A stretch of DNA of 64,000 nucleotides, from positions 186,001 to 250,000 of IMG/VR virus record IMGVR_UViG_3300042562_001598; one strand, written 5' to 3'. How positions within the stretch are numbered: the stretch's first letter is position 1; each line of letters opens with the position of its first letter. This document shows positions 22,211 to 49,890 of this stretch, one piece after another. A program made the position numbers and the translations under genes. The notes beneath the pieces are model-generated. The model was not told where the DNA came from, searched no databases, and saw nothing but the letters and a program-made list of their open reading frames with translations.

Positions 22211-22285
22211 TTTTTTATTTTTTATCAAAACATACAGAAAATCCTTTAACAAAATAATGTTAAAGGATTTTTTTGTTAATTGATA

Positions 22286-22293
22286 TATTTATA
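22286..22293 (+). promoter_or_regulatory. Phage late-promoter motif TATTTAT(A), representative copy
   Basis: Found shortly upstream of >15 structural/leader genes (e.g. 243, 4790, 18931, 26412, 34004, 39933, 41822, 44264, 49297). Confidence 0.7.
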
Positions 22294-22306
22294 ATAAAAA
22301 ACTAAT

Positions 22307-22717
22307 ATGAAAAATTTATTTAATGACATTTCTCAAGAAGAGAAAAATAGAATCCTTGAGATGCACTCGGGTAAAAAAAATGTGATATCTGAACAAGAAA
22401 TTGGTGGTTACAAAGAAGGACCTGGTGACCCTCAAGGTGATGAACTTGACCACTATAATAAAATTGTAAAACCAAAATTGTTAGCTGTAGGTTTTAAAGA
22501 TGAATATGATAAAAATTTAAAACAATTTGGCACGGAGAATTCTTTAACTTATGGTGGACACAATAACGGTGTTAATGTCCTATGGGATAGAATAAAAGGG
22601 GTTTATCATGTGTGGGCCGGAAATGATAAGGGAAAACGACAATTCCAACTTGGTCCAAATGACCCAAAAGTTGTCGCTAATAAAGTTGTTCAGTACGCTT
22701 TATCATTAAAGAGATAA
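22307..22717 (+). CDS. Leader-family cargo protein
   Basis: MKNLFNDISQEEKNRILEMHSGKKNVISEQ leader identical to that of 26412. Confidence 0.75.
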   Translation: MKNLFNDISQEEKNRILEMHSGKKNVISEQEIGGYKEGPGDPQGDELDHYNKIVKPKLLAVGFKDEYDKNLKQFGTENSLTYGGHNNGVNVLWDRIKGVYHVWAGNDKGKRQFQLGPNDPKVVANKVVQYALSLKR

Positions 22718-22788
22718 TAAATGACAAATAAACCACCAATTATGGTGGTTTTTTTTGTTTTTATAATATTTTTATTTACATTTGTTCT

Positions 22789-23241
22789 ATGAAAAAAGAA
22801 ATCAACATAGTCAATAAGAAAGCGAAACACGAATACGAGTTTTTACAGACTTACGTATGCGGCGTTAAGCTAATCGGTTGTGAAGTAAAATCAATACGCC
22901 TAGGTAAGGTTTCCATATCCGAGGGGTATTGTTACTTCAACAATAACGAATTATTCATTAAAGGAATGAACATATCTGATTATGGTTACGGCACAGTCCA
23001 TGATAACACCTCAGATAGAAAGTTATTATTAAAACGGAAAGAGTTAAACAAATTAGAAAAAGAACTCGTAAAAGGCCTTACAATCGTTCCTTACAGGGTC
23101 TTTACAAATGAGAGAGGATTGATTAAAATAGAGATATCCCTATCTCGTGGTAAAAAGAACTACGATAAAAGAAATGACCTAAAGTCCAGGGATATTGATA
23201 GAGATAGTAAAAGAGAAATTAGTGGTCGGTTCACAAAATAA
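22789..23241 (+). CDS. smpB: SsrA-binding protein
   Basis: NKKAKHEY, GVKLIGCEVKSIR, RKLLL, RGKKNYDKR. Confidence 0.95.
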   Translation: MKKEINIVNKKAKHEYEFLQTYVCGVKLIGCEVKSIRLGKVSISEGYCYFNNNELFIKGMNISDYGYGTVHDNTSDRKLLLKRKELNKLEKELVKGLTIVPYRVFTNERGLIKIEISLSRGKKNYDKRNDLKSRDIDRDSKREISGRFTK

Positions 23242-23265
23242 ATAAATTAAAAAAAAATTAAAATT

Positions 23266-23571
23266 ATGGTAGATTTAATGTCATTAGCGTTAGGGGTAGT
23301 TGCAGTTCTTATTGTATTGGGGGTTGTGATTATGTTTTATGCTGTCAATCAAGTTTTTTTACTTAAAAAAAAGTTTGGTTATTTAGAAAAAGAAACACAA
23401 GATAATTATAACTTCTTACATAGAAGGATTAACGAATCAGAAATAAGTTCAGAACAAATGGTTATGCGGTCACACAATCATATTGATGAGGTTGAAAAAC
23501 AATTAATAAGTATGATTGACTCCAGGTTGGATAAACTGGAAAATAAAATAATCCAAAAACAAGTATTATAA
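23266..23571 (+). CDS. Membrane-anchored coiled-coil protein
   Basis: N-terminal TM; IDSRLDKLENK. Confidence 0.6.
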   Translation: MVDLMSLALGVVAVLIVLGVVIMFYAVNQVFLLKKKFGYLEKETQDNYNFLHRRINESEISSEQMVMRSHNHIDEVEKQLISMIDSRLDKLENKIIQKQVL

Positions 23572-23676
23572 ATAAACGAACCGACCATTAATTACACCCC
23601 TCTTCACCGGAGGGGTTTTTTATTACCCATACTTAAGTATTAACCAAAAAAAAATGAGACCCGAAGGTCTCATTGC

Positions 23677-24063
23677 TGGTGGAGATGCCGGGATTTGAAC
23701 CCGGGTCTTGCCCATCCTAAAGATTAAGGACTACACGCTTAGGTCAACATTTTTCTAATGTTCCGAAAATAGTTAGTTCGTTCTTCACCATTGTAAACTA
23801 ACAACCAATGGATGACTCGATTTCGGGTTCAGTCATTTTTCCACCTTTGTAAGACCTTATGTTCCTGGGTTATATGGTTACCGACCCGTTGTTGTTCAAC
23901 TAATTAAGCTGTAACAACTTCTTCAGAGCGGATTAATCCTACTGCTGAAAGTTTTGCGATTGTTTCGCCGTTTGAATTTTGTGACCATAGATTTAAGTGA
24001 TAGGAAACTTCTCACTGCGTGCCCCCAATAAATAGCAATGCCAATCAATACCATTTCATCCCC
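23677..24063 (-). ncRNA. ssrA: tmRNA
   Basis: GGGGATG/CATCTCC-ACCA with G3:U70; T-arm GGTTCAAATCC; tag ORF GETIAKLSAVGLIRSEEVVTA* at 23969-23904. Confidence 0.92.
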
Positions 24064-24144
24064 CATTGTTTTATTATACTACAAATATATATGATTATTT
24101 ATTAATAATCAAATATAGAGTATATTTATTAATAAATATTTTTT

Positions 24145-25500
24145 ATGGCTGATATAGATAATAGTAAAAACAACGCATACGAAGGAACTCGTATTATTGT
24201 AAATACTGAAGACTTAATGTTTTTGGAGGTTTTAGCTCCGGATTCTTTAGGTTATTTTGGACTTGATTGGGTTAAGAACCGATATGATAGATTTAGAGAT
24301 GGTAATTTATATTTAATTGTTGATAAGAGAGAACTCCCTGTAAATGTTAAAGTATTATATACTGACACTGATGGTGAATTTTTCGGATATTATCAATCTG
24401 GGGATACTATAAAGTATTCTGAACTACTTTTAGAGTATCCTGAGTTAGTGGACCAAATAACAGCTTTAGAACCGGTGAGTGAAATATATGACGCATTACT
24501 TTCAATCTCTGAAGGACAGGAATTATCAAAATACAACCTTAGAAATATTGATGACTTAGTTAGTGATTTCAAATTTAACAAACGAAGTCCAAGGGCTAGT
24601 TCTGTTATGTTATCATTTGATGATGTTGATGATATTCTTGGGATATTTGATGTTAGTGAGGACGATAAGTGGTTTGTGGGAGCTGTAACATCTTATGATA
24701 GTTATGAATTTGAGTATTGGGATAATGTTCATGATGATTGGTTACAAGGGTATGGTTTAGACCATTTTAGTGGTGTCGAAAACGAAACTAGAATTGATAA
24801 TATTTTAAAAGTTATATTACCTGGTCATAGTATAAATACGAATGATGATGAGGAACGACAATTAATTTGCAATACTTTAGAGACTTTTTTCCCAAGTGAA
24901 ATTGAGGATGTTTTAGATACCTATATTCGTGAACAAAATTATTGTAAAACAAGAGGAACCTTAAAGGAAATAGAATCAGATGTTTCTAATTTATTTGAAC
25001 CATATAACATATTCAAAGTAGGTGAAGGGTATAATTATGTTACAAGTGTTAAAACTTTATTAAGTCTATATGAAAATGTGGGTTCTAAAAAATATACATT
25101 AAAAGAACTTTTAGCTGAAATTAATAAAGATACTGAAGTTGGTGGTTGGGCTGAATACATGTATGAAACAGAATGTGATGAGTTTGACCAAGTAACTATG
25201 GATAGAACTGTAAGTCAGGCTTTAGATTCTATGGAAGAAGGTTTAGAGGATTCTGATAAGTTTGAGGATATTGAGGAATTTAAAAAAATGGCGGATTTTA
25301 TTTTATCAAAATATGATTTAAATAGAAATTATGAAACACCTAAAGATAGTAATATCAGATTTACCATACATCAACTAGACCCCTCCGATAATTCTGTATT
25401 GGTTACGGTTAAAAACCTTGAGAAAAGAACTTCAGAAAAAAGAAGATTAGATTTGGAAGGGTTTAATAATTTATTAACTCAACAAGAATTATTTCAATAA
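24145..25500 (+). CDS. Acidic hypothetical protein
   Basis: 451-aa ORF. Confidence 0.7.
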   Translation: MADIDNSKNNAYEGTRIIVNTEDLMFLEVLAPDSLGYFGLDWVKNRYDRFRDGNLYLIVDKRELPVNVKVLYTDTDGEFFGYYQSGDTIKYSELLLEYPELVDQITALEPVSEIYDALLSISEGQELSKYNLRNIDDLVSDFKFNKRSPRASSVMLSFDDVDDILGIFDVSEDDKWFVGAVTSYDSYEFEYWDNVHDDWLQGYGLDHFSGVENETRIDNILKVILPGHSINTNDDEERQLICNTLETFFPSEIEDVLDTYIREQNYCKTRGTLKEIESDVSNLFEPYNIFKVGEGYNYVTSVKTLLSLYENVGSKKYTLKELLAEINKDTEVGGWAEYMYETECDEFDQVTMDRTVSQALDSMEEGLEDSDKFEDIEEFKKMADFILSKYDLNRNYETPKDSNIRFTIHQLDPSDNSVLVTVKNLEKRTSEKRRLDLEGFNNLLTQQELFQ

Positions 25501-25540
25501 AGATAGTGACGATTAAATTTCTTTTTATTATCTTTGTTTT

Positions 25541-26359
25541 ATGGAAAGAAATTATCAACTATTGAAAGATGTTTTATCGGTTCCGACTAAAACATATAAT
25601 GAAGGATTAATGGTGGAATTCATAACCAATTGGTTATCGGAGAATAACATCCCCTTCTATATTGACGAGTATCAAAATATTTACGCTACAAAACAAACTT
25701 TTGAGGTGGAATATTTCCCTTGTGTTATTGCACATACGGATACCGTTCATAACATTGACACTATCAATGTAAGAGAAGAAAATCTTAAAAACGCACAAGG
25801 TGAAATAAAACCTGCGTTAAAGGCTTATAATGATTTGGGTAATCCAACTGGTATTGGTGGTGATGATAAATGTGGCGTTTATGCTTGTCTTGAATTACTA
25901 AAAGAATTACCAAATCTAAAAGCTGGATTTTTCGTATCTGAAGAAACTGGATGTCACGGTTCTAAAAACGCGGACCCTGAATTTTTTAAGAATGTGGGGT
26001 ATGCTATTCAATTTGACGCTCCGGAGAACTGGATGGTTTCAGAATATTGTATGGGTGTTAAGTTATTTGATAGAGAGAGTGATTTCTTCAAGTCTTGTGA
26101 TTTTGTTATAAACGAAAACTTTAATGGTCGTCAATTATACCAAGCACATCCTTATACAGATGTTTATAAATTAAAACAGATTTTTAATTTTTCTTGTATT
26201 AATTTCTCAATCGGGTATTACGATTATCATACAAAATATGAATATGTAATTATTGAAGATGTTTATAGTGGTATTAAAACCGGGAAAGAAATGATTGAAA
26301 AACTAGGATATCAAAAATATACCTTAGAATACGAACAATCAACATATAACTTTTATTAA
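25541..26359 (+). CDS. M20/M28-family zinc peptidase
   Basis: AHTDTV, GGDDKCG, SEETG, terminal YH. Confidence 0.85.
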   Translation: MERNYQLLKDVLSVPTKTYNEGLMVEFITNWLSENNIPFYIDEYQNIYATKQTFEVEYFPCVIAHTDTVHNIDTINVREENLKNAQGEIKPALKAYNDLGNPTGIGGDDKCGVYACLELLKELPNLKAGFFVSEETGCHGSKNADPEFFKNVGYAIQFDAPENWMVSEYCMGVKLFDRESDFFKSCDFVINENFNGRQLYQAHPYTDVYKLKQIFNFSCINFSIGYYDYHTKYEYVIIEDVYSGIKTGKEMIEKLGYQKYTLEYEQSTYNFY

Positions 26360-26411
26360 GAGACTTCGGTCTCTTTTTTTTTTTGTGATATATTTATAAT
26401 AAAAAACTAAT

Positions 26412-27113
26412 ATGAAAAATTTATTTAATGACATTTCTCAAGAAGAGAAAAATAGAATACTTGAGATGCACTCAGGTAAAAAGAATGTAATTTCTGAACA
26501 AAATAGTCAACAAGTTTATAAAGAAATTGCGGATTATTTATATAATTCTATGAAAGGGTTAAGTTCCTCTGAGGATTCAGAAAATGTTGAAACAATTATA
26601 CTTAATAGAATAAAAAATAAAAATGATTGGGAAGGAGTTAAAAAGGCTTTTGGGGTAAAAGACGGTGAAAATTTGGAACAGTGGTTAAAAGGTGAACTTA
26701 GACTTGATTATAATGAAATAATGGGAATGATAAATCGAAATGACGGTAATTTTAAGAAAGAAGATTCAATGTATAATCCGGGGTCTAAAATTAGTTTAAT
26801 TACTAATAGACAGTTTCTTATGTCAAGAGCATATCAATATGCAAGTATTATGGGTGACAAAAAAGAATTAGAATTGGATATTAATAACGCAATAATTATT
26901 CGTAGAGATAAAGATGGGATAGTTATTAAAACTGATTATGTTGATTATTACCCAATTCCTGAATATACAAGAGGAAAATCTACACCAAAACAAGAAAGAT
27001 TAACAAAACCTTGTATAAAAATCCCTTTTAAAGATGTAATTGAATGGAGAGATGGTACTTTACAAATTAGATGGTTTTCTGATTTTGTTAAAAGTAGGGT
27101 AGTACCTTGTTAA
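26412..27113 (+). CDS. Leader-family cargo protein
   Basis: First 30 aa identical to 22307; unrelated thereafter. Confidence 0.75.
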   Translation: MKNLFNDISQEEKNRILEMHSGKKNVISEQNSQQVYKEIADYLYNSMKGLSSSEDSENVETIILNRIKNKNDWEGVKKAFGVKDGENLEQWLKGELRLDYNEIMGMINRNDGNFKKEDSMYNPGSKISLITNRQFLMSRAYQYASIMGDKKELELDINNAIIIRRDKDGIVIKTDYVDYYPIPEYTRGKSTPKQERLTKPCIKIPFKDVIEWRDGTLQIRWFSDFVKSRVVPC

Positions 27114-27142
27114 ATTCTAAATTAATATAAAAAAAAAGAGGA

Positions 27143-27655
27143 CTATTTGTCCTCTTTCCTTTTTCTTGTTTTCTTAGATGTCTCTTGGAGACTTAACTTC
27201 TTTTTCTACTGAAACAAGGGTATATAACACACCTTCCACCATATTTCCTTTGATAATCTCTTCGGATACAAAATCCTCAATCTTATCTTGGATTGTTCTT
27301 TTGATTGGTATAGCTTCGTAAGTCTCGTCAAATCCAACATCGGAAATCAAATGTAAAATAGTTTCATCAAATGTGATGTTATAGTTCAAACCAACTAATC
27401 TTTTTGATAACTTATCTAATTCCAATGTTACAATTTTTTTAACATCTTCCTTCACCAACGAATTAAAGATAACAACCTCATCAATTCTATTTAAGAATTC
27501 CGGAGTAAAGAATTTTTTAAGTTCTTTTTTAAGAATTTCTCGTTTGTATTCTTCTTCAGCATAAGAGTTATTACCGGTTTTAAATCCCACACCTGAACCA
27601 AAGTCTTGTAATTTTTTAACCCCCACATTTGATGTCATAATGATGACACAATTTT
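27143..27655 (-). pseudogene. 3' fragment of a second, divergent clpC allele
   Basis: NCVIIMTSN...PEFLNRIDE; GAR motif changed to EAI; frameshift separates the basic tail LQETSKKTRKRKEDK*. Confidence 0.8.
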
Positions 27656-27850
27656 TAATTTTTCTTGTATTAATTTCTCAATTGGGTATTATGATTATCA
27701 CACAAAATATGAATATGTAATTATTGAGGATGTTTATAGTGGTATTAAAACCGGGAAAGAAATGATTGAAAAACTAGGATATCAAAAATATACCTTGGAA
27801 TATGAACAACCAATTTATAACCTTTATTAAGAGACTTCGGTCTCTTTTTT
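27651..27850 (+). repeat. Duplicate of the peptidase 3' end plus terminator (26180-26379)
   Basis: ~200-bp near-identical direct repeat, including AAGAGACTTCGGTCTCTT. Confidence 0.9.
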
Positions 27851-27881
27851 ATTTATTGGTATTTATTAATAAAATGTTATT

Positions 27882-28274
27882 ATGAAAAAATTAATAATTA
27901 CTGAAGAAGAAAAAAATAGAATACTTAATCTTCATTTAAACGAACAAAGTAAAGAAAATTCCGCAGTTAAATTTATAAAAAATTTATTGGTAACAAATCC
28001 AAATTTATTTAATGGTAAAAAACCTTTAAGTTTATTAGAAAAACCATTGAATGATTTTAACTCAAAAAACCCTTCCGATAGATTAGATATACCATCATTA
28101 GTAAAACAGTTGTCGGTTAATAATTCACCTTTTAAAATGACCACATTCAACATTCAAACCTATGAACCAAAACGCATTACTAGGTTAGATTATGACTTAA
28201 ACAACATTGGTTTTACCTTAACAAAAAATGAAATTGATAACTCAATACAGGGTGGTGTTAAATTAAAATTTTAA
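27882..28274 (+). CDS. Leader-family cargo protein
   Basis: MKKLIITEEEKNRILNLHLNEQ. Confidence 0.75.
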   Translation: MKKLIITEEEKNRILNLHLNEQSKENSAVKFIKNLLVTNPNLFNGKKPLSLLEKPLNDFNSKNPSDRLDIPSLVKQLSVNNSPFKMTTFNIQTYEPKRITRLDYDLNNIGFTLTKNEIDNSIQGGVKLKF

Positions 28275-28325
28275 GAGACTTCTGTCTTTTTTTTTATTTT
28301 AAGTATTTATTACTAAAACACTATT

Positions 28326-29144
28326 ATGAAAAACTTATTTATACTAACCGAAGAAGAAAAAAATAGAATTTTAAATCTTCATGAAAGTGCCACAAAACGA
28401 CATTATTTAGTTGAACAAGAAATAAAACAAGGACCTGAAGGTGACCCATATCAATATAAAAAAATTGGTGACGAATATTTTTACGCTAAGAAAAATGACG
28501 ACAATTGGACTAAAGTTAATAACCCTAAAGGTATTACAGATATCAAAAATACTATTTTTAATTCATCAATAAATAAATTAACAACTCAAAAACCTGAAGC
28601 TTATTTATTATTTGATGGTACTAATTTAAATTGGATTGAGAATGGTAAAGTTATTAAACGATGGTCAGCAATTTCAGGAAGAACTAAATTTAATACTTTT
28701 GGTGATAAAAATTTGGAGAAATTAGTTAAAAAATATGGGGCTAATAGGATGGAATTTATGAAAATTAAAGACCAAGGTCCTATACCTGTTGGTGAATATT
28801 CTATAGGTCAAGTACAAAAACGAACAAATGGTGACGCTCAAAGATTTATACAAGGTAAAACGGATAAAGAGTTACAACGTATTATGTTACAAAATGTTAA
28901 ACACGATTGGAATTTAGGAACAGAAACTGATATGGTTGCTTGGGGTAATTACAGATTACCAATAACTAAAGTTGGTGAAACTGAAACTTTTGGTAGAGGT
29001 AGTTTTTACATTCATGGTGGTGGTATTCCAGGTTCTATTGGTTGTATTGATTTATTAACTCAAATGGATGATTTCGCAAACTATTTCACAAATTGGAAGA
29101 ATAAAACAAAAAAAAATAAATTAAAATTAGTTGTTAAGTATTAA
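28326..29144 (+). CDS. Leader-family protein with Tlde1/DUF2778 L,D-transpeptidase-like domain
   Basis: Leader ...EEKNRILNLHESATKRHYLVEQ; GPIPVGEY; RGSFYIHGGG..GSIGCI. Confidence 0.75.
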   Translation: MKNLFILTEEEKNRILNLHESATKRHYLVEQEIKQGPEGDPYQYKKIGDEYFYAKKNDDNWTKVNNPKGITDIKNTIFNSSINKLTTQKPEAYLLFDGTNLNWIENGKVIKRWSAISGRTKFNTFGDKNLEKLVKKYGANRMEFMKIKDQGPIPVGEYSIGQVQKRTNGDAQRFIQGKTDKELQRIMLQNVKHDWNLGTETDMVAWGNYRLPITKVGETETFGRGSFYIHGGGIPGSIGCIDLLTQMDDFANYFTNWKNKTKKNKLKLVVKY

Positions 29145-29551
29145 TTTTACTAATAAATAAATAAATAAATAAATAAAAATGAAAAAAGTAGTTAAATTAA
29201 CTGAAAGAGAATTAAATAATCTTATTAGGAGAATGATTAACGAAGATATGGAATCTTCTTTAGAATCAAAAGGTGGTAAATGGTTAAGTGTTAAAAACAA
29301 AATACCCGCAAACCCACCTAAAATGTCTCTTGGTGCTTTAAAAGAAAGATTGGGTAATGACGGATATTCTAATGATAATAGTGATGAACCTTTAGCAAAC
29401 ATTCAAGTTTTTGTTCATGGAGCAAAAAACCCTGGTGAGAACATTCCGATGAGATTATTATTCCGTAACCCAACAGACCCAACAGACAGAAAATGGTATG
29501 AACTAGTTGCTTAATAAAAAAAAAATAAATTAAAATTAGTTGTTAAGTATT
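29108..29551 (+). repeat. 35-bp direct repeats (29108-29142, 29517-29551) flanking one gene
   Basis: A9-TAAATTAAAATTAGTTGTTAAGTATT occurs at both positions. Confidence 0.85.
29179..29514 (+). CDS. Cargo protein with MKKVVKLTE leader
   Basis: MKKVVKLTERELNNLIRRMINE. Confidence 0.7.
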   Translation: MKKVVKLTERELNNLIRRMINEDMESSLESKGGKWLSVKNKIPANPPKMSLGALKERLGNDGYSNDNSDEPLANIQVFVHGAKNPGENIPMRLLFRNPTDPTDRKWYELVA

Positions 29552-30101: not shown

Positions 30102-32153
30102 TTATTCGTCCCCTTTTTTCTTTCTACCTCTTTTCAAAGGTTCTTTATTTTTAGTTATAATAACTTCTTTATCTACAACATCAACCACACTTGAGTCCCC
30201 CTCGTTAATTTCACCTTTCAAAATCTCTTCAGAGATGAAGTCTTCAATTTTATCTTGAATAGCTCTTTTAATAGGTCTTGCTCCATAGTTTTCATCATAA
30301 CCAACATCAGATATCAATTCAGTTACTTTATCGGTATAACTAAAGTTATATTTGATTTTAGCAAGACGACCCATTAGTTTATCTAATTCTAAAGTAACAA
30401 TCTTTTTAACATTCTCTTTATCTAAAGATTTAAACATAATAACATCATCAATTCTGTTTAAGAATTCAGGCGCGAAGAATTTTTTAAGTTCAGCTTTAAG
30501 GATATCGTTTTTAAGTTCTTGTTCAATATATTCGTTACCACCATTTTTAAATCCAACACCAGTTCCGAAGTCTTGTAATTTTTTAACACCTAAATTAGAT
30601 GTCATAATGATAAGACAGTTTTTAAAGTTAATTTTTTTACCTAAAGAGTCAGTTAAGTGACCTTCATCTAACATTTGTAAAAGTGTTGAGAAGATATTTT
30701 TATCCGCTTTTTCAATCTCATCAAATAAGATAACAGAGTAAGGTTTATTTTTAACTTCATTAGTTAAGAATCCACCTTCTTCGTGGGCAACATAACCTGG
30801 AGGAGAACCTATAAGTCTTGAGATTGTATGTTTTTCTTGATATTCTGACATATCAATTCTAATCATATTTTCTTCACTACCAAAAATTTCTTTTGCTAAT
30901 TGTTTTGCTAAATAAGTTTTTCCTACTCCGGTAGAACCTAAAAAGATGAATGAACCAATTGGACGATTTGGGTCTTTAATACCTAATCTATTTCTTCTGA
31001 TAGCTTTTGCGATTTTAACCACGGCTTCAGGTTGACCAACAACTTTATCAGCTAAAGCTTGTTCTAAATTAACTAATGCTTTAGTATCGTCAATTGATAA
31101 TTTTGATACAGGTATTTTAGTCATATTAGATACAACTTCATATACTAGTTCTTCAGGAATTTCTCTTTTATGAGCTTGTAATTCCGCTTCAAATTTTATT
31201 TTTTCATCCTCTAATTTTGATAGAATTCGTTTTTCTTTATCTCTAAGATTAGCCGCTTCTTCATAGTTTTGTTTTTTAACTACCTCAATTTTTTCCAATT
31301 TAATATCTGACGCTTGTTGTTTTAATTTTTCAATTATTTCAGGCATCTTAATATCAACTTGACTTCTCGCACCAACTTCGTCTAAAATATCAAAAGCTTT
31401 ATCCGGGAATTCTCTGTCGGTAATGTATCTATCCGCTAAATCAACACAAATTTCTAAAATAGAATCAGTGTAATTTACTTTATGATATGATTCATATTTT
31501 TCTTTAGCGTTTTTCAAGATGATTAATGTTTCTTCTTTTGTTGCAGAATCAACAATAACCTTTTGAAATCTTCTTTCTAATGCTCCGTCTTTTTCAAAGT
31601 TTTTTCTATATTCATCTAAAGTTGTTGCTCCAACACATTGGATTTCACCTCTTGCTAAAGCTGGCTTAAAGATGTTTGACGCATCCATTGACCCGGATGA
31701 ATTTCCCGCACCAACAATGGTGTGAATCTCATCAATGAATACAATTATGTTTGGAGAGTTTTGTAACTCCTCAATAATAACTTTCATTCTTTCTTCAAAT
31801 TGTCCACGGTATTTTGTTCCTGCAACAATGGATGTCATATCTAAAGATACGATTCTTTTATCCATTAAGTTTCTTGGACAATCCCCATTATATATTTTAA
31901 TTGCAAGACCTTCAACGATTGCAGTTTTACCACAACCAGGTTCACCTAATATAATAGGATTATTTTTCTTTCTACGAGAAAGAATTTGAGCAATCCTAGT
32001 GATTTCTCTTTCACGACCAACTACAGGGTCTAATTTACCTTCTTCAGCTAACTTTATTAAGTCTCTACTAAAGTTATCTAATACAGGTGTTGTTGATTCT
32101 GAGATGGAATTTGATTTTTTTCCTTTTTCGTCATTATCTGAAAATTCTATCAT
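30102..32153 (-). CDS. clpC: ClpC-like AAA+ unfoldase lacking the N-terminal Clp-repeat domain
   Basis: Walker A motifs GEPGCGKT and GSTGVGKT; FIDEIH; UVR M-domain QNYEEAANLRD; GARP. Confidence 0.92.
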   Translation of the reverse strand: MIEFSDNDEKGKKSNSISESTTPVLDNFSRDLIKLAEEGKLDPVVGREREITRIAQILSRRKKNNPIILGEPGCGKTAIVEGLAIKIYNGDCPRNLMDKRIVSLDMTSIVAGTKYRGQFEERMKVIIEELQNSPNIIVFIDEIHTIVGAGNSSGSMDASNIFKPALARGEIQCVGATTLDEYRKNFEKDGALERRFQKVIVDSATKEETLIILKNAKEKYESYHKVNYTDSILEICVDLADRYITDREFPDKAFDILDEVGARSQVDIKMPEIIEKLKQQASDIKLEKIEVVKKQNYEEAANLRDKEKRILSKLEDEKIKFEAELQAHKREIPEELVYEVVSNMTKIPVSKLSIDDTKALVNLEQALADKVVGQPEAVVKIAKAIRRNRLGIKDPNRPIGSFIFLGSTGVGKTYLAKQLAKEIFGSEENMIRIDMSEYQEKHTISRLIGSPPGYVAHEEGGFLTNEVKNKPYSVILFDEIEKADKNIFSTLLQMLDEGHLTDSLGKKINFKNCLIIMTSNLGVKKLQDFGTGVGFKNGGNEYIEQELKNDILKAELKKFFAPEFLNRIDDVIMFKSLDKENVKKIVTLELDKLMGRLAKIKYNFSYTDKVTELISDVGYDENYGARPIKRAIQDKIEDFISEEILKGEINEGDSSVVDVVDKEVIITKNKEPLKRGRKKKGDE

Positions 32154-36736: not shown

Positions 36737-36741
36737 TAGTT

Positions 36742-41821: not shown

Positions 41822-42541
41822 ATGATAAAGTTCGGTATATTAAAATCACAGGTTGAGAATGTATTATTAGAATCATATAAAAATGATACATTTAAAAAAG
41901 AAGTACAAAATTTTAAGAAACTTGTATTAGAAAATAAAAATATTAATAAAATATTTTATCTATATGATGATTTAACCTCTAACAAGGGGTTAAATGAATC
42001 TATAGTTAATGAATACATCACTGAATGTATTTCAATTTATGAAAATACAATTAATAAAATTACACCATCCGATATTGATAAATTAAAGAAATGGGTTGGT
42101 AATAATAAAACAGAAAATATATATGAATCTGTTGACAATTTATTTTCAAAAGATGTTCTTATGATTGAGTCAAGAATTCAATCTAAAAAAGTTATTTCAG
42201 AAACTTTAAAAGTATCCCCTAAACAAATTCAGGAAAATGTTAACATACCTTTAGGTTCAATGGTTAATATTGCAAATAAAACTATTAACACATTTATTGA
42301 AAATTTAGAGGAGTCAGATAAAAAAGAATTAAAAACTTTATTATCAACAGATGATGAAGAATTAAAATTAAAGTATGATTCAATTAAAGAAACTATCATC
42401 ACAAAATTAACTAAAATGAAAGGCGATGAACTAGATGTTTCAACTAACAATACAATCAACGAAACAATTGATAGAGTTGTTTCAGAAAAATATGATAAAT
42501 TAAATTATGTTAAACTTAAAACTTTAAACGAAAATTTATAA
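41822..42541 (+). CDS. Head-module hypothetical protein
   Basis: Between portal and protease; late promoter. Confidence 0.65.
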   Translation: MIKFGILKSQVENVLLESYKNDTFKKEVQNFKKLVLENKNINKIFYLYDDLTSNKGLNESIVNEYITECISIYENTINKITPSDIDKLKKWVGNNKTENIYESVDNLFSKDVLMIESRIQSKKVISETLKVSPKQIQENVNIPLGSMVNIANKTINTFIENLEESDKKELKTLLSTDDEELKLKYDSIKETIITKLTKMKGDELDVSTNNTINETIDRVVSEKYDKLNYVKLKTLNENL

Positions 42542-42667: not shown

Positions 42668-43138
42668 ATGAAAAAAGGAAAAACATCACAGATTGATGGA
42701 TTTGATAATGCAAAAATAACTTACGGAACAGTAGATTCTGTAAATCTAAAATCAATTTATCTTAACATACAAACTTGGGTTGAACCAATAACCGAAGTTG
42801 AAGATTGGAATAGAATAGTTTTAAACTTAAGTAGAAACATTAAACACTCCATTTACGAGGTTATGAATGAAGATGTATTCACAAAAACTTTTATAGTTGA
42901 TTTAGATTTGAGGTCAAGTGGATTATCAATATTAAAGAAATCATTTATGAATTTAGAAATTAATTTTTATCTTAACGATAGTGAAATTGATTTTAAAGAT
43001 GAAAAAATAAGAAAAACATTGTCAAAAATAACATACGAAATATTCAAAGAGAATTTTAAAGATAATAAATATTTTAATTTTTATTTAACTAAAACATCTA
43101 AATTATGTGATAATATGTTAGAAATAGAAAATTCTTAA
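42668..43138 (+). CDS. Hypothetical protein
   Basis: Start moved to MKKGK. Confidence 0.65.
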   Translation: MKKGKTSQIDGFDNAKITYGTVDSVNLKSIYLNIQTWVEPITEVEDWNRIVLNLSRNIKHSIYEVMNEDVFTKTFIVDLDLRSSGLSILKKSFMNLEINFYLNDSEIDFKDEKIRKTLSKITYEIFKENFKDNKYFNFYLTKTSKLCDNMLEIENS

Positions 43139-43162: not shown

Positions 43163-43897
43163 ATGAGTAATATAGAAATTAATAAAACTAATGTCCTTAA
43201 TAAAAAATTAATTCTAATTGAATACGATGCGGGTTATATTTCACCAAAAGATGAGTATAATTCTAAAATAATTAAAGAGTCTGATGGTATGTTAGACCAT
43301 TCAAAACCTTTTGAATTTTACGCTGTATTACAAAAATACGATACCCCTAATAGAAATGGTAGAGTATACCCTAAAAGACTATTAGAAAGAGAAGCTCAGA
43401 ATTATAGAAAAATGATTGAGAAAGGAACTGCGTTATCAGAATTAAACCATCCTGAATCATCATTAATTGACTTAGATAGAGTATCACATTTAATTACTGA
43501 TGTATGGTGGGAAGGACCTGCGTTAATCGGTAAAATAAAACTATTAACAACACCAGGTTACCACGAAAGAGGTATTGTATCATCTAAAGGTGATTTGGCT
43601 GCCAATTATTTAAGACAAGGGGTTACTTTAGGTATCTCATCAAGAGGTGTAGGTTCGCTTAAAAAAGTGGGTGAACAAAATGAAGTTCAAGACGACTTTG
43701 AACTAATTTGTTTTGACTTAGTTTCATCACCATCAACACCGGGGGCGTATCTATACCATAACGAAGGTGATAGACAGAAATATGATGAAAACCTTGACGA
43801 AGAAAAAAAGACAACTATAGAGCGACAAGTCGGAAGTAATGGTAATAAATCACTTGACTTAATGAAAAAATTAAACGATTATTTAGGAAACAAATAA
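43163..43897 (+). CDS. Prohead core protease (T4 gp21-like)
   Basis: NRNGRVYP, ELNHP, GISSRGVGS, DLVSSPS. Confidence 0.95.
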   Translation: MSNIEINKTNVLNKKLILIEYDAGYISPKDEYNSKIIKESDGMLDHSKPFEFYAVLQKYDTPNRNGRVYPKRLLEREAQNYRKMIEKGTALSELNHPESSLIDLDRVSHLITDVWWEGPALIGKIKLLTTPGYHERGIVSSKGDLAANYLRQGVTLGISSRGVGSLKKVGEQNEVQDDFELICFDLVSSPSTPGAYLYHNEGDRQKYDENLDEEKKTTIERQVGSNGNKSLDLMKKLNDYLGNK

Positions 43898-43909
43898 ATA
43901 AAATATAAT

Positions 43910-44119
43910 ATGGACGAAAAGTACTTTGTTGCAAAAATCGCAATTGATTCAATTGATAATGAATCAGGTAAATTAAAAAAACTTAGAGAAGAAAAATTAG
44001 TTAGGGGTTATAATCCAACTGATGTTGAATCTAAAGTAACCAAAATCTATGAAAACTATAACCTTGCTTGGAGAATTACAGGAATTGTTGAAAGTAAAAT
44101 TGACGAGGTAATAGAATAA
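43910..44119 (+). CDS. Small hypothetical protein
   Basis: ORF track. Confidence 0.6.
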   Translation: MDEKYFVAKIAIDSIDNESGKLKKLREEKLVRGYNPTDVESKVTKIYENYNLAWRITGIVESKIDEVIE

Positions 44120-44263
44120 TTATCAATTAAAATTAAATTAAAAGAGGACTTATTAAGTCCTCTTTTTTTGTTTATATAAAAAAATATTCATTTTTAATAC
44201 AAAAAAAGTGATTTTTTTTAACTTTTTCTTTTTTCTCAATATTTATAATAAATAAAAACAATA

Positions 44264-45631
44264 ATGGCAAAAGAAAAATCTTTAGTTGAGGACGCAATCA
44301 TCCAAATGAGAAATTTGGAAGAAGCTGTTGCGGAAAATGCAAAAGGAATACTTGCTTCTACAATGAAGGAAGAAATCAAAGAACTAGTAAAAGAATCTCT
44401 GACCGAACAAGAAGACGAGATTGACACAGATGTTGAAATGGATTTACCTACGGATGACGAAGGTGATGAAATGGATATTGATAATATTGACGATATGGAA
44501 GACGAAGAAGACTTTGATGAGTTTGGTGATGACGAAGACGTTATTGACCTAACTGATATTGAAGACGATTCTGAAATCTTACGTGTATTTAGTTTATTAG
44601 GACCTGAAGATAATGTTATAGTTAAGAAAGACGAGACTGGTAACATTAGCTTAAAAGATGGTGATAAAGAATACATGATTGTTGGTGAAAACGAAGACGA
44701 AGATGCTGACATGGAAATGTTTGAAGGTTTCGGAGAATTTGAAGACGACGAAGAACAAGAAGAAGACGAACTTTACGAAGAAGATGAATTTTCAAATGAA
44801 GATGAATCTATTGACGATATCGTTTCTAAAGTATTTGGAGAAGGTCAAGACTTTGAGGATAATGAACTTGAAGAAAATGATGAAGAAGTTGTTTACGAAA
44901 TTGAAATGGACGACGAAGATTTAATGGATGAAGAAGATGAATATCTTGAGGAATCTAAATCAACAATTAAACCTAAAGGTGTTGGTATGGGTAAACCAAA
45001 ATTCTCTTATAATTCTAAACCAAATCAAGGAAAAGGTTTCAACACTAAAATGAAAGAAGCCCCTAAATCTGTTGGAACTGGAAAAGCGAAATTTGAATTT
45101 AAAGAAGACGAAGATTTTGAAAAAATAGAAACTAAAGAAGCTGCTCGCACTATCGGAAATGGTTCTAAATCAGGTCGTGGTCTTAGAAAAGGTATTACTC
45201 CTAATAGAAACTTGGAATTCCCTATTAAAGAAAATACTGACGCTAAAGAACTACAAATCCTTAGAGAAAAAAACGAAGAGTATAGAAAAGCTTTAAATAT
45301 TTTCAGAAATAAATTAAATGAGGTTGCTGTTTTTAACTCAAACTTAGCTTACGCTACTCGTTTATTTACTGAATGTACTACTTCAAAACAAGAAAAAATA
45401 AACATATTGAAAAGATTTGATGGTGTTGAAACGATTAAAGAATCTAAAAACTTATATCAAAGTCTTAAAAATGAATTGTCAGTTAAATCTGGTAAACCAA
45501 TCAATGAATCTATTGAGTCTAAATTAGACAAAACACATTCAACTGGTTCTGCCGTTAATTTAATTGAATCAAAAACTTACGAAAATCCACAATTCCTTAG
45601 AATGAAAGATTTGATGAGTAAATTAAAATAA
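44264..45631 (+). CDS. Prohead scaffold/core protein (gp22-like)
   Basis: Very acidic, coiled-coil; directly upstream of the major capsid gene. Confidence 0.75.
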   Translation: MAKEKSLVEDAIIQMRNLEEAVAENAKGILASTMKEEIKELVKESLTEQEDEIDTDVEMDLPTDDEGDEMDIDNIDDMEDEEDFDEFGDDEDVIDLTDIEDDSEILRVFSLLGPEDNVIVKKDETGNISLKDGDKEYMIVGENEDEDADMEMFEGFGEFEDDEEQEEDELYEEDEFSNEDESIDDIVSKVFGEGQDFEDNELEENDEEVVYEIEMDDEDLMDEEDEYLEESKSTIKPKGVGMGKPKFSYNSKPNQGKGFNTKMKEAPKSVGTGKAKFEFKEDEDFEKIETKEAARTIGNGSKSGRGLRKGITPNRNLEFPIKENTDAKELQILREKNEEYRKALNIFRNKLNEVAVFNSNLAYATRLFTECTTSKQEKINILKRFDGVETIKESKNLYQSLKNELSVKSGKPINESIESKLDKTHSTGSAVNLIESKTYENPQFLRMKDLMSKLK

Positions 45632-45662
45632 AAAATAAACATAAAATTAAACAAAAACAAAA

Positions 45663-47507
45663 ATGGGAGCATTATTAGAATCAGGTCTTGTTGGTAACAT
45701 CGGACTAAAACACCTTAAAGTTATCAAAGAAGATACTATTAACAAATGGGATAAATTAGGATTCCTAGAAGGTCTTAAAGGACACTTAAGAGAAAACGTA
45801 GCTCAATTATATGAGAACCAAGCGTCTTTCTTGATTAACGAAGCTACTTCAGAAGGTTCATCAGGTTCATTTGAAACTGTTGTATTCCCTATCGTAAGAA
45901 GAGTTTTCTCAAAATTATTGGCGAATGAAATCGTATCTGTACAAGCAATGAACTTACCAATTGGTAAATTGTTCTTCTTCGTACCTAAAATTCAAGGTTA
46001 CAATGGTGGTGTTGAAGGTCAACAATCAGGTGACCACTACGCACCAATAGGTTCTCCAGGAAACTACTCAGGTAGTACAGAAGCTGGATATACAGGTGCT
46101 GGAGCTTACGCTAAAAATCTTTATGATTTGTTTTATGAAGGTACTGAACCAGGATTGAACCCAGGTGGTTTATTTGATTACTCTAAAGGTAGATGGTCAG
46201 CTATTACTTCTACAGTAGCTATTCAACAATGGTCTAATGGTAATTTAGTTGACGCTGTAATTTCTGGTACTTCAACAAGTGCTGGTGTTATTGCTGGAGG
46301 TAATACAAGAAAAGTAATTGTAAAACTTTGTGGTTTCCAAGATACTGGAGCTGGTAAATTAATTGGACCTGATGGAAATGAAATGGACACAGAAACTTTC
46401 TTGTCTGATTTAATTATCTACACTGGTTCTGGTTTAACAGTTGCCGCTGGTAGTCCATGTACAGTTTCAACAGGAGCTTTATTGTATAGAGTTGTTACTC
46501 AACAATATGGTCAAGGTATCGTAAATGGTGCTTCAGGAACTAGAACTCAAACTTCTTGGCCAACAAACAACGGTGGTTCATTCCAAAGTCCATGTAACGC
46601 TAACGGATGTATCTTCTTAGAAGTTGATTTGTCTTGTCCAGCTTGTGCTGATTGTGGTTCTGATTCATTAGATGGATACACTGGAACAACTATTTCTACA
46701 GGTTTAACTTCATCATCTTTCAACGCTGCTTGGAGACGTTACGAAGAATTAGAATTTGAAGATAAAATCGGTGAGGTTTCATTTGATTTAGAGTCTGTTA
46801 CTGTATCTGTTACAGAAAGAAAATTAAGAGCACAATGGTCTCCTGAGTTAGCTCAAGACGTTGCAGCTTTCCATAACATTGATGCTGAAGCAGAATTAAC
46901 TGCTTTGTTATCTGAACAAGTTGCGGCAGAGATTGACCGTGAAATCTTAAGAGATTTACGTAAAGGTGCTGCTTGGACTTTGAGATGGGATTACAATGGA
47001 TGGAGAAGAGTAGGAGCTACAACTTCTTATACACAAAAAGACTGGAACCAAACTTTGATTACAGCTATTAACCAATTGTCAGCACAAATTCACAAATCTA
47101 CTTTAAGAGGTGGTGCTAACTGGATTGTAGTTTCTTCTGAGGTTTCTGCTATCTTTGATGACTTAGAGTACTTCCACGTATCTAACGCTTCAGCTGAACA
47201 AGACCAATATAACATGGGTATTGAAAGAGTTGGAACATTAGCTGGTCGTTACCAAGTTTACCGTGACCCTTACTTCCCAGCTAACCAAGTGTTAATTGGA
47301 CATAAAGGTACTTCATTGTTAGACACAGGTTATATCTACGCACCATACGTGCCGTTGCAATTAACTCCAACAATGTATAACCCTTTTAACTTTACTCCAA
47401 TAAAAGGAATAATGACAAGGTATGCTAAAAAAATGGTAAACAACCGCTTTTACGCCCGAATTACTGTTGATGGTGTTAGAACATTTGATATTAAAGAATT
47501 AAGATAA
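45663..47507 (+). CDS. Major capsid protein (T4 gp23-like)
   Basis: RKLRAQWSPELAQD...IDAEAEL, EIDREI, YAPYVPL, GIMTRY. Confidence 0.96.
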   Translation: MGALLESGLVGNIGLKHLKVIKEDTINKWDKLGFLEGLKGHLRENVAQLYENQASFLINEATSEGSSGSFETVVFPIVRRVFSKLLANEIVSVQAMNLPIGKLFFFVPKIQGYNGGVEGQQSGDHYAPIGSPGNYSGSTEAGYTGAGAYAKNLYDLFYEGTEPGLNPGGLFDYSKGRWSAITSTVAIQQWSNGNLVDAVISGTSTSAGVIAGGNTRKVIVKLCGFQDTGAGKLIGPDGNEMDTETFLSDLIIYTGSGLTVAAGSPCTVSTGALLYRVVTQQYGQGIVNGASGTRTQTSWPTNNGGSFQSPCNANGCIFLEVDLSCPACADCGSDSLDGYTGTTISTGLTSSSFNAAWRRYEELEFEDKIGEVSFDLESVTVSVTERKLRAQWSPELAQDVAAFHNIDAEAELTALLSEQVAAEIDREILRDLRKGAAWTLRWDYNGWRRVGATTSYTQKDWNQTLITAINQLSAQIHKSTLRGGANWIVVSSEVSAIFDDLEYFHVSNASAEQDQYNMGIERVGTLAGRYQVYRDPYFPANQVLIGHKGTSLLDTGYIYAPYVPLQLTPTMYNPFNFTPIKGIMTRYAKKMVNNRFYARITVDGVRTFDIKELR

Positions 47508-47558
47508 TCAAATATACTTAATTAAAACTAAAGGGACAAGAAATTGTCCCTTTTTTTT

Positions 47559-49178
47559 TTATAATAAAATTTCATATTTTAAATTACCGGTATCCCATAT
47601 TTTATCGTAACCTAATTCAGACATTATTTGAGATTCTGTTTTATTTTTATCATAACCTAACTTAACTAATCTATCTTTTCTATAGTTAAACCTATGTTCT
47701 CTAACATCATATTTTTTAGTATAACTATAATTAGGTTTTGTTTCCCCAATATAATTAAACCCTGTTTTAGAATAAAAACAAAATTCATCTGAAGGTGACC
47801 AATTTCTGTTAGAATATGTTATAATTTTTTTAGGTGAATATTCCTTTATAAAATGTTTTAATAATTTTGTAAATCCACCAACTACATTTACGGAACAATA
47901 ACGATATAATTCATATTCATCTATAGTTTTATTTTTATTACCTAAAATTTTTCTTAATGAACCAAATGACATAACGGCAACAATAATATCATTATGTTTT
48001 AGACCAAAGTATATTGTTGATTTATCATTACCTTGTAAATGGTTAGTCTTAAGAAAATTACTTTTTTCATCACTACTTATAGTTGTTATTTCACAATTTC
48101 TCGCATAAATTTTAGTATTATTTTTCTTCAATAAATTAGTAATTCTATTTTTTACTATATTTTTCTTTGTTAACCATTCGTCAGAAAAAATATGAATTAA
48201 TTGAATGTTTTTTTCAAGACATTTTAATGTTTTATCTATATGATAATTTTTATGTTTCCCCCTATTTTCTGAGTGCCAATATAATCCATTATATTCTATA
48301 GCTATATTATAATCAGGAAAATACAAATCTAATTCAACACCATTTAATTGTTTCTTATCACAAACTTTAACATCAACACCTAATGATTTAACATATTCCT
48401 CAATTTCTTTTTCAGATTTACTTCTGTAGTAAAAATTAGTTTCACATTTTAATAAATTAGATACAAATGTGTCTTTTGTTTTTTTAGAAATTAAAGAGTT
48501 TTCGCCAAATTTATTTTTATATTCCTCGGTTGTTATATTATGTGATGACAAATGAGTGTTAGATAACATTTTAAATTGTTCGTCACATAATTCACAAGTG
48601 ACATAATTATCTGTTTCATTAAATAACACATCTCTGTCAATAGAATTTGATAACGTTGTGAATAGTTTAAGTTCTGAAGGGAATTTTAACACATAATCAC
48701 TAATTGAGTTGTGTGCGTTTTCAATATGTTTAGATAACGCCCCGGATTTATTAACAATATCTTTGGTGACCCATCCACATTCTAAACATTTTATTGTTGT
48801 TGATTCCGGTTTAGTGATTAAATTAAAGTAAGTAAAATGCCAATAATTCCCAGTATCCGTTAAATACATTCTTCTTTTGAATGAAGATGGGATAACTTCA
48901 TTAGGGTAACATTTTTTAATATGATTAGTTACTCCACCACTTTTATTTTCAATGTCATCATATTCTTTACCACAACACTTACAAGATAGTATAATATTTT
49001 TATTATCTAACTCAATCTTTTTGACCTGTTTATGTTTGATTTGACCACCTTTAGTTTTTAATGGTATGTTATTACTTAATAAAATTTTTTTAATTTTAAG
49101 TTTACCAACCTTAAATTCTTTAGCCAAGGTCTCAATAGAGACATTATCTTTATACTTTTCAATTATTATATCTTCCAT
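47559..49178 (-). CDS. Free-standing homing endonuclease (zinc fingers + PD-(D/E)xK/Vsr-like domain)
   Basis: Three CxxC...H fingers; ELDLYFPDYNIAIEYNGLYWH; convergent with the capsid gene. Confidence 0.8.
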   Translation of the reverse strand: MEDIIIEKYKDNVSIETLAKEFKVGKLKIKKILLSNNIPLKTKGGQIKHKQVKKIELDNKNIILSCKCCGKEYDDIENKSGGVTNHIKKCYPNEVIPSSFKRRMYLTDTGNYWHFTYFNLITKPESTTIKCLECGWVTKDIVNKSGALSKHIENAHNSISDYVLKFPSELKLFTTLSNSIDRDVLFNETDNYVTCELCDEQFKMLSNTHLSSHNITTEEYKNKFGENSLISKKTKDTFVSNLLKCETNFYYRSKSEKEIEEYVKSLGVDVKVCDKKQLNGVELDLYFPDYNIAIEYNGLYWHSENRGKHKNYHIDKTLKCLEKNIQLIHIFSDEWLTKKNIVKNRITNLLKKNNTKIYARNCEITTISSDEKSNFLKTNHLQGNDKSTIYFGLKHNDIIVAVMSFGSLRKILGNKNKTIDEYELYRYCSVNVVGGFTKLLKHFIKEYSPKKIITYSNRNWSPSDEFCFYSKTGFNYIGETKPNYSYTKKYDVREHRFNYRKDRLVKLGYDKNKTESQIMSELGYDKIWDTGNLKYEILL

Positions 49179-49296
49179 AAATATAATTATACCTAAAAAA
49201 GGAATGGAGTCAATTTTTTTAACAAAAATATATTTTTTTATTATTTGTATAATAAATTATTATAAACTTTGTGATATTTATTAATAAAAAGATTAT

Positions 49297-49890
49297 ATGA
49301 AAAATTTATATTCCTTAAATGATGAGGAAAAACAGAGAATATTAAATCTTCACGAGAATGCAACAAAACGTCAATATTTGGGAGAACAATTAACTGATGA
49401 AACTGGTAAATATACTCCAGTATATAAACCTGAAGTTGGTCCTGATACTCAAGTAGATGCTAGTAAGAAATTTACCCCAGCGGCAATGGCTTGTATTAAA
49501 CAATTTGGTGAATATAAACCGGCTAAAACACCTGGTTTTGTTCAGGTTGAAACAGATAAAGCCACTGTATTCTTTAGTAAAGATTATGAAGTTAGATATC
49601 GACCAACCGGTGGTGAAATTATAAAGGGTCAATGGTCTTGTATGAGTAATGTTTTTAATATTAATCTAAACGATGATTCAACTTGGTCAAGGGCTCAAGG
49701 TGGTTGGAAGAATCCGACAATTAATACTAAACCTCAAGTTAAAATAAATCCGGTTTTACAACAAACAATGACGATTAATAAACAAATTCAACAAAAACTT
49801 GGATTAAAACAAACAGGTAAATTAACTCATAATGAATTGGAAGTTCTAATTAAAACATTAACACCTAACGCTACACCAACTCAACAATAA
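49297..49890 (+). CDS. Leader-family cargo protein
   Basis: MKNLYSLNDEEKQRILNLHENATKRQYLGEQ; C-terminal PG-binding-like IQQKLGLKQTG. Confidence 0.75.
   Translation: MKNLYSLNDEEKQRILNLHENATKRQYLGEQLTDETGKYTPVYKPEVGPDTQVDASKKFTPAAMACIKQFGEYKPAKTPGFVQVETDKATVFFSKDYEVRYRPTGGEIIKGQWSCMSNVFNINLNDDSTWSRAQGGWKNPTINTKPQVKINPVLQQTMTINKQIQQKLGLKQTGKLTHNELEVLIKTLTPNATPTQQ

Follow-up and report, generated by a model that had tools for sequence, protein, structure and literature searches.

A conserved N-terminal leader ending in a prohead protease motif on unrelated proteins of an uncultured T4-like jumbo phage, and its probable role in capsid targeting

The stretch of DNA analyzed here (the window) is 64,000 nucleotides long and corresponds to bases 186001-250000 of the virus record IMGVR_UViG_3300042562_001598, a genome of 282,192 bp with a G+C content of 30%. 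It contains seven genes which begin with one and the same leader of about 30 residues and continue into unrelated proteins, called cargo below, together with a T4-type head module. Window DNA was detected in 24 or more metagenome runs from lake water or fresh water, and the phage was for this reason regarded as uncultured. It is a giant (jumbo) T4-like lake phage. The closest records were three virus genomes of 176-309 kb with capsid proteins 80-82% identical to that of the window. The closest cultured phage was Flavobacterium phage immuto (capsid approximately 40% identical). Positions are those of the window unless marked "genome", genes are named by their first base and (-) denotes the reverse strand.

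Leader genes and head module in the window

A hidden Markov model (HMM) was made from the seven leaders and run against all stop-to-stop open reading frames (ORFs) of the 282-kb genome. The seven ORFs on which a common leader had been seen in an earlier note on this DNA (ATG at 3069, 12539, 22307, 26412, 27882, 28326, and 49297) were all confirmed, with E values of 2e-9 to 9e-18 (Table 1). The first round also matched genome 103992 (E 4e-7) and, more weakly, genome 175420 and 108200. One iteration brought the family to 11 members, the next-best match having an E value of 0.6. The four members outside the window begin at genome 103992, 108281, 173080, and 175483. The leader consensus is MK-NLFI-x-EEEKNRILNLH...YL-x-E-Q. 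The start at 3069 is an internal ATG of ORF 2964-3608 and was taken as the likely start because the promoter motif lies 15 nt upstream of it.

The 11 cargo parts are mutually dissimilar, with a best pairwise BLASTP E value of 0.14. The leader region of these proteins had no match among Pfam or PHROG families. PHROG gave no match for five of the six leader-bearing window proteins scanned, and for gene 28326 it matched two families of unknown function over the cargo part only. Similarity between the genes had been described as ending exactly at an [IL]-x-E-Q site, which holds for eight of the 11; gene 12539 has L-P-E-N, gene 3069 has P-K-E-Q, and genome 175483 lacks the motif. The shorter [LI]-x-E was present in nine, followed by Q in eight and by N in one. 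Short leaders (27882, genome 108281 and 173080) have dropped the ESATKRHY segment and kept [LI]-x-E-Q. The leader copies vary at synonymous sites, which places the constraint on the peptide. Genome-wide, [LI]-x-E-Q occurred within the first 45 residues of 22 ORFs compared to 10.6 expected; outside the leader family the count was 14, too weak an excess over 10.6 to point to further hidden tags. A Sec or lipoprotein signal peptide was rejected by inspection rather than by a predictor, as only 4-5 hydrophobic residues precede the acidic EEEK run and the criterion was a hydrophobic core of approximately 10-15 residues after a basic N-terminus.

The TATTTAT motif reported before nearly all leader genes was found, as TATTTA(T), upstream of the ATG in all 11. 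The distance from its end to the ATG is 14-19 nt in ten genes and 4 nt in the eleventh, gene 12539, and the genome-wide spacing between TATTTAT and ORF starts peaks at 14-16 nt. At 14-17 nt the motif also precedes the protease gene, the scaffold-like gene 44264 (17 nt), gene 41822 and several genes of 1,600-2,100 codons. This distribution is as expected of a late or structural promoter. Two spacing classes before the ATG, 14-17 nt and 4-5 nt, were seen among the TATTTAT motifs of the genome, and the shorter one may give leaderless transcripts.

The head module has the gene order of T4 genes 20, 67, 68, 21, 22, and 23. A homologue of the T4 gp21 protease had been proposed at 43163, and its identity is well supported by matches to Peptidase_S77 (Pfam, 4e-24), the PHROG head maturation protease (3e-45) and PDB 5JBL (3.5e-16). 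Aligned with T4 gp21, it conserves the catalytic residues His96 (ELNHP) and Ser160 (SSRG), and its N-terminal L-I-L-I-E falls opposite L-L-I-E of T4 gp21. The L-I-E at the N-terminus of T4 gp21 is a candidate autocleavage site (PMC9026906). Neither of the two small genes between portal and protease matched a family; gene 41822 contains 11 [LI]-x-E sites. The scaffold-like protein contains 13 such sites, S-L-T-E-Q among them. In the capsid protein, ...ASFLINE60/ATSEG lies opposite ...GSFLTE/AEIGG of T4 gp23, with two more [LI]-x-E sites just upstream (a slash marks the end of a leader or propeptide throughout). The T4 gp23 cut is after Glu65. The capsid protein matched T4 gp23 and PHROG capsid profiles at its two ends only, residues approximately 105-365 being a G/S/T/C-rich insertion which T4 gp23 does not have. 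Leader gene 49297 lies just 3' of the capsid gene, and a leader gene likewise adjoins the capsid gene in one relative (G001).

Table 1. Leaders, head genes and associated features of the window, with one gene from elsewhere in the genome
Feature	Position (strand)	Associated elements	Basis
Divergent leader, 36 aa, ends P-K-E/Q, gene 3069-3608	3069-3176 (+)	TATTTA 3047-3053, spacing 15 nt	Leader HMM, E 5e-16
Leader, 29 aa, ends L-P-E/N, gene 12539-12922	12539-12625 (+)		Leader HMM, E 5e-16
Leader, 29 aa, ends I-S-E/Q, gene 22307-22717	22307-22393 (+)	TATTTAT 22286-22292	Leader HMM, E 3e-16
Leader cassette, gene 26412-27113	26358-26498 (+)	Hairpin 26358-26375, TATTTAT 26391-26397, leader 26412-26498	
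Short leader, 21 aa, ends L-N-E/Q, gene 27882-28274	27882-27944 (+)	Hairpin 27829-27846, TATTTAT 27860-27866	Leader HMM, E 2e-9
Full leader, 30 aa, ends L-V-E/Q, gene 28326-29144	28326-28415 (+)	Degenerate hairpin 28271-28299, TATTTAT 28304-28310	Leader HMM, E 9e-18
Cargo of gene 28326, predicted L,D-transpeptidase fold (YkuD/Tlde1)	28416-29144 (+)		Pfam
Class-B leader MKKVVKLTERELNNLIRRMINE/, gene 29179-29514	29179-29244 (+)		Class-B HMM, E 1.4e-6
Large terminase	38097		
Portal	39933		
Two small genes in the position of T4 gp67/gp68 (prohead core), between portal and protease	41822-42541, 42668-43138 (+)		Position only
Prohead protease, T4 gp21 family, Peptidase_S77	43163-43897 (+)		
Acidic scaffold-like protein at the T4 gp22 position	44264-45631 (+)		Synteny with T4
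Major capsid protein, 614 aa	45663-47507 (+)		
Predicted capsid propeptide, gene 45663-47507	45663-45842 (+)		Alignment with T4 gp23; region identical in relatives
Leader, 30 aa, ends L-G-E/Q, gene 49297-49890	49297-49386 (+)	TATTTAT 49275-49281	Leader HMM, E 3e-17
Candidate endolysin, PG_binding_1 and Glyco_hydro_19, leaderless	genome 178770-179561 (-)	Promoter motif	

Distribution, cargo and further leader classes

When residues 1-40 of gene 28326 were used in a word-seeded search, 248 proteins were retrieved, near-identical over the first 31 or so residues and completely divergent after them. The scan with a leader HMM that had been proposed for the genome and its relatives was productive. 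In addition to the 11 genome members, the profile matched 1,452 clusters at E <=1e-3 among 1.84 billion representative proteins, and the match began at residue 1 in nearly all of the best 150 of these clusters. By profile position and by BLASTP of the cargo, the tag stands at the extreme N-terminus of unrelated proteins, as does the capsid-targeting sequence (CTS) of T4. A conservation profile was made from one representative of each of 60 BLASTP-defined cargo families. Information content was approximately 1.5-4.3 bits per position (mostly 2-4) as far as L(-2), E(0), and Q(+1), and dropped to 0.3-1.1 bits at +2 and beyond. L or I at -2 and E at 0 were present in all 60 families, a figure made partly circular by the anchor regex. 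The conserved His lies 11 residues from the Glu in 244 of 255 sequences.

At the DNA level, a degenerate pattern that requires the exact leader core EEEKNRILNLHE found 32 loci in IMG/VR and had zero matches in 185,579 prokaryote genomes. A tblastn search with the 34-aa leader gave no match in 50,697 phage records, possibly as a result of low-complexity masking. Relatives contain five to seven leader genes apiece. A 292-kb relative has three leader genes, with cargo unlike that of the window, in the slot that separates the 451-aa and 272-aa genes from the ClpB-like gene, and the locus is therefore hypervariable. The S77 protease was encoded by seven of the eight searchable leader-carrying virus records, the exception being a 40-kb fragment with an estimated completeness of 14%.

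The cargo of gene 28326 matched Tlde1_dom (4.7e-8, 33.9 bits, cut-off 30.1) and YkuD (8.9e-7, 30 bits, cut-off 23.4). Its putative catalytic pair H230...C240 is invariant in a sequence alignment. The cargo of genome 103992 matched PG_binding_1. Pfam searches of 105 representatives of the leader proteins found PG_binding_1 in 11, LysM in three, TseH in two, YkuD/Tlde1 in one, PG_binding_3 in one, and three weak singletons, the others giving no match; approximately 84% of representative cargo had no wall domain. By these assignments all recognizable cargo domains are peptidoglycan-directed, the three weak singletons aside. The earlier note had guessed at cell-wall enzymes and possible anti-defence proteins. 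Cell-wall enzymes were indeed found; no anti-defence-like protein was seen among the window proteins and the 105 representatives. Cargo pI was above 8 in eight of the 11 leader genes compared to 33% of similar-sized genome proteins. An ESM Atlas look-up with the 49297 cargo gave weak leads to PG_binding_1 only (score 0.71).

Glycine-zipper-like stretches were noticed in some cargo (e.g., P0147 and P0187). Directly behind the leader, many cargo proteins also have a small module, (Q)G-x-x-GDPY-x-Y-K...G-x-Y-x-F...W (P0001-P0120; 28416-28520 in the window), by which 163 of 243 cargo sequences are linked in a single BLAST component. This region of gene 28326 had no Pfam match and was the best-modelled part of the protein (mean pLDDT of 72-85 per 10-residue block over residues 31-80).

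Five looser variants of the leader and one C-terminal form had also been listed. With its threshold relaxed to E 10 the leader HMM still failed to recover the C-terminal form at 20111 and the variants at 1494, 2741(-), 4790, and 49905. All that 4790 and 49905 have in common with the family is the layout of an N-terminal segment, [IVL]-x-E-Q, and an S/T/P-rich linker. The variant at 29179 proved to be a different leader, a member of a second class (class B, the leader described so far being class A). The class-B HMM was made only from metagenomic YkuD relatives, independently of 29179, and it matched 29179 and four to five genes outside the window. Class B in this genome (MKKVI-x-LTE-x-DL-x-RLIKKVI-x-E) is found at 29179 and at genome 151394, 152366, 152698, 155609(-), and 101242. 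The promoter motif is on the members outside the window and not at 29179, and the cargo of genome 151394 is thioredoxin-like (WCGPC). A third N-terminal motif, MNLNENI-x-RIK-x-MMG, begins genes at genome 125081, 125873, 145136, and 146083 and one gene of an unrelated 124-kb contig (L051:11484). A similar string is at the C-terminus of gene 20111 (20111-20647).

The N-termini carried by one type of cargo were compared with a search using the YkuD/Tlde1 part alone (residues 95-272), which returned 90 relatives. Class A was present on 16 and class B on 36, the latter with approximately 22 residues (MKKIIKLTESDLxxIVKKVLxE/). Nine had a short leader of 11-16 residues, e.g., MKILNFSQFLLE/A and MRILNFADFFFE/A. 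These short leaders (MKILNFxxFLLE/A) resemble the T4 ipII/ipIII and ipI tags, and one of the genes adjoins a T4 gp13-type neck gene. An [LI]-x-E starting in residues 8-30 was present in 60 of the 67 non-class-A relatives and in 7% of 734 control windows from the same proteins, counts which come from related sequences and are neither independent events nor a probability. Three dissimilar leaders on one cargo are thus seen to converge on the same predicted [LI]-x-E junction.

Probable capsid targeting and competing explanations

In the T-even phages the use of one tag on diverse cargo is already established (PMC3012670, PMC9026906). In the T4 record NC_000866 the tag of ipII and ipIII is MKTYQEFIAE/A and that of ipI is MKTFKEF...ITE/A. 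In T4 IPIII, replacing E by D prevents the cut. As in the T4 internal proteins IPI, IPII, and IPIII, the leader is a short N-terminal tag on unrelated proteins and closes with L/I-x-E, the motif of gp21-family prohead proteases. Several tagged genes per genome at variable loci, the head-gene order of portal, core, protease, scaffold, and capsid, and mostly basic cargo are further points of likeness. The leader is on balance probably a capsid-targeting propeptide removed by the prohead protease, a functional counterpart of the T4 CTS in a freshwater lineage of uncultured T4-like jumbo phages.

The genes would be transcribed late from the TATTTAT promoters. With its hydrophobic start and the helix after it, the leader would dock the protein on the scaffold or core of the assembling prohead, and the S77 protease would cut behind the invariant L-x-E and leave the cargo free inside the head. 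The cargo would exit with the DNA at infection and act at the host periplasm and cell wall, the likely site of action because the identifiable cargo binds or remodels peptidoglycan. A plug-in tag loading diverse effectors into the head for injection was the proposal of the earlier note. It gains partial support from the sharp L-x-E-Q boundary, the retention of [LI]-x-E-Q in shortened leaders, the three leader types, the intact protease, the homology of the capsid propeptide to that of T4 and the co-occurrence of leader and protease in seven of eight records; packaging, cleavage and injection, like docking and the site of action, are steps which we infer. The repertoire had also been called larger than that of T4. 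This is correct for one genome (11 genes, and more with class B, compared to three), whereas at least ten internal proteins are known from the T-even phages together (PMC12373910).

A number of points weigh against capsid targeting. The phage is known from lake-metagenome DNA only, and packaging and cleavage, established in T4, are predictions here. The residue after the predicted cut is Q in 58 of the 60 cargo families, whereas the T4 sites (ipI, ipII, ipIII, and gp23) and the phage's own predicted capsid site have A. L-x-E-Q could therefore be a structural or binding motif instead. No homology to the T4 CTS was detected, only the MK start and the hydrophobic character being common to both, and the leader is 2-3 times longer (21-36 residues compared to 10-19 in T4). 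The first 7-8 residues of the pattern MK-hydrophobic-ITE are also on approximately 20 ORFs, mostly without a promoter motif at 8-22 nt; the variant at 1494 is of this generic kind (MKIIITEN). Flavobacterium phage immuto has the protease and gave no leader match. The relatedness of the sequences behind the [LI]-x-E counts takes away some of their force. An AlphaFold2 model of gene 28326 from 10 sequences had a pLDDT of 58, and below 40 in the leader, and was uninformative on docking and on the relation of leader to cargo. The identifiable cargo of T4 is an inhibitor of type IV restriction. T4 internal proteins work in the cytoplasm, but cargo directed at peptidoglycan needs release in the periplasm. 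We know of no case in which T4-type head proteins are released there.

The leader could instead be a non-virion N-terminal helix for oligomerization, stability, regulation or partner binding on late cytoplasmic proteins, among them lysis accessories which would gain access to the wall only once the holin has acted. The late-type promoters, the cell-wall domains and the wider occurrence of MK-hydrophobic-ITE N-termini in the genome agree with this. It is nevertheless unlikely. Five to 11 tagged paralogous genes per genome with unrelated cargo would be unusual for lysis factors, and the large share of cargo that lacks a wall domain does not fit them either. The leader proteins were rejected as the main endolysin, and are not simply the lysis enzyme, because a separate leaderless candidate endolysin is present elsewhere in the genome (Table 1). 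Nor would this reading account for the invariant protease-type motif at the junction or for the tight association with phages that encode S77.

Another possibility is an uncleaved loading tag for a different part of the virion, such as the tail tube lumen, the baseplate hub or spike, or an external decoration, with the contractile tail delivering the cargo to the periplasm. Periplasmic delivery suits a tail route better than a head route, and the recognizable domains are peptidoglycan-directed, with Tlde1 and TseH named after type VI effectors that act in the periplasm. A conserved N-terminal module on polymorphic C-termini is the layout of type VI effectors, and the glycine-zipper-like stretches of some cargo would be in keeping with a tail tag. 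We still hold a tail tag to be quite improbable. Such a tag leaves open to question why [LI]-x-E closes three unrelated types of leader on one cargo and is retained in shortened leaders, the leader genes adjoin head genes and not tail genes, and to our knowledge there is no phage precedent for a tail-loading tag.

The leader is also part of a repeat in the DNA. Three leader copies are preceded by a terminator hairpin (AAGAGAC-TTCG-GTCTCTT and a T run), and hairpin, TATTTAT and leader recur as a cassette in the genome and in relatives. A 128-nt repeat (22269-22396 and 26374-26501, 93% identical) ends at the last codon of the leader (Q30). Direct repeats of 212 nt (26180-26391 and 27651-27862, 93% identical) flank a 1,471-bp cassette which holds gene 26412 and the reverse gene 27174-27638. 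One lake-metagenome contig joins 26179 to 27651, exactly without the 1,471 bp and with 159 and 524 nt on the two sides, and the presence of the cassette is therefore polymorphic in the natural population. Other joints between leader copies extend only a short way to their sides and could be artefacts of assembly or of joining across genomes, so that only this deletion was trusted. Contig depth in four lake runs was highest on three leader segments and many contigs entered unlike sequence at their edges; leader DNA is therefore common to many other genes in those communities. A repeat acting mainly as nucleic acid, be it terminator, promoter or 5' coding cassette for expression or recombination, with a functionless peptide, would account for the cassette, for the repeat that stops at the leader's end, for the contig pile-up and for the cassette-less variant, but it is very improbable given the synonymous differences between copies that keep the peptide, the 1,452 clusters with an amino-acid pattern and a residue-exact boundary, and the several leader genes of relatives that have no promoter of their own and directly follow another gene, and because DNA-level modularity and recombination explain the spread of the tag and not its retention.

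Capsid targeting was taken one step further, tentatively and with rather less than even confidence. Uncultured T4-like jumbo phages of fresh water may possess a polymorphic-effector system in which at least three interchangeable tags with a protease motif load a large, fast-shuffling virion repertoire directed at the host envelope. This repertoire would comprise more than 1,400 clusters for one tag, with Tlde1 and TseH homologues and peptidoglycan-binding modules, and heads would carry periplasmic effectors of the type VI style. If so, the class of cargo and its scale have not been described for T4-type internal proteins. Should the tag work as a capsid-targeting sequence, the T4 principle would extend from a few E. 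coli phages to a large environmental group of jumbo phages. The tag would be another one, longer and highly conserved, and wall enzymes and binding modules would take the place of restriction inhibitors. Phage-injected proteins would be connected with type VI secretion effector families. A sequence rule (leader, L-x-E, linker) would flag virion-delivered proteins in metagenomes, making candidates of more than 1,400 clusters of unknown function. In the literature searched there was no description of this tag or its scale, of a second and third class of leader on one cargo, or of its peptidoglycan-directed and type-VI-like cargo.

Type VI effectors with MIX or FIX markers have a comparable plan, a conserved N-terminal loading module followed by polymorphic C-terminal domains that attack the envelope. 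The Tlde1 and TseH cargo families are common to both, as would be delivery by or alongside a contractile machine. Unlike type VI effectors, the leader genes belong to a virus without a type VI apparatus, and the leader is much shorter than the marker domains and ends in a protease motif. The MuF polymorphic toxins of temperate phages and the Dar proteins of P1 travel inside the head and are injected; the part used for packaging is conserved and the effector parts vary. Their packaging part is a large domain or depends on a helper protein, unlike the leader, and no MuF (phage head morphogenesis) domain was matched by Pfam in the window proteins or the 105 representatives. The cleavage motif of giant phages of the phiKZ type is (S/A/G)-x-E. 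The propeptides on the ejection and inner-body proteins of phiKZ, 201phi2-1, and SPN3US are heterogeneous instead of a single conserved tag, and the capsid and protease lineages differ from those of the window. Many proteins inside the heads of jumbo phages are cut after a glutamate by a protease related to gp21, and some of them are ejected into the host (PMC9026906, PMC5694885).

Neighboring genes

Thirteen tRNA genes were found at 8183-15749, where the G+C content is higher (35-38%); for one of them the anticodon loop was called as abnormal. Leader gene 12539 lies inside this tRNA cluster, and T4 ipI likewise adjoins a tRNA cluster. Between the capsid gene and leader gene 49297 is a reverse-strand ORF of 539 aa (47559-49178 (-)) with a ROS/MucR zinc-finger match and weak restriction-endonuclease-like matches. 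Its position and orientation are those of the homing endonuclease gene segD in T4.

Host-like genes of the protein-quality-control type lie near the leader cluster (22789-23241, 27174-27638 (-), and 30102-32153 (-)). One ORF there is SmpB-like by the start of its sequence, and the corresponding region of a relative has a 144-aa gene with a Pfam SmpB match. A fragment resembles the C-terminus of an ATP-dependent (Lon-type) protease. A gene of 683 aa has a syntenic counterpart in a relative which matches ClpB-type AAA+ domains. Outside the window, genome 133,772-160,900 contains approximately 50 tandem small ORFs of 52-95 aa on both strands. They form a very large paralogous family whose members start with MKTK-x-x-LGKSV and continue into degenerate xSVxxSV repeats.

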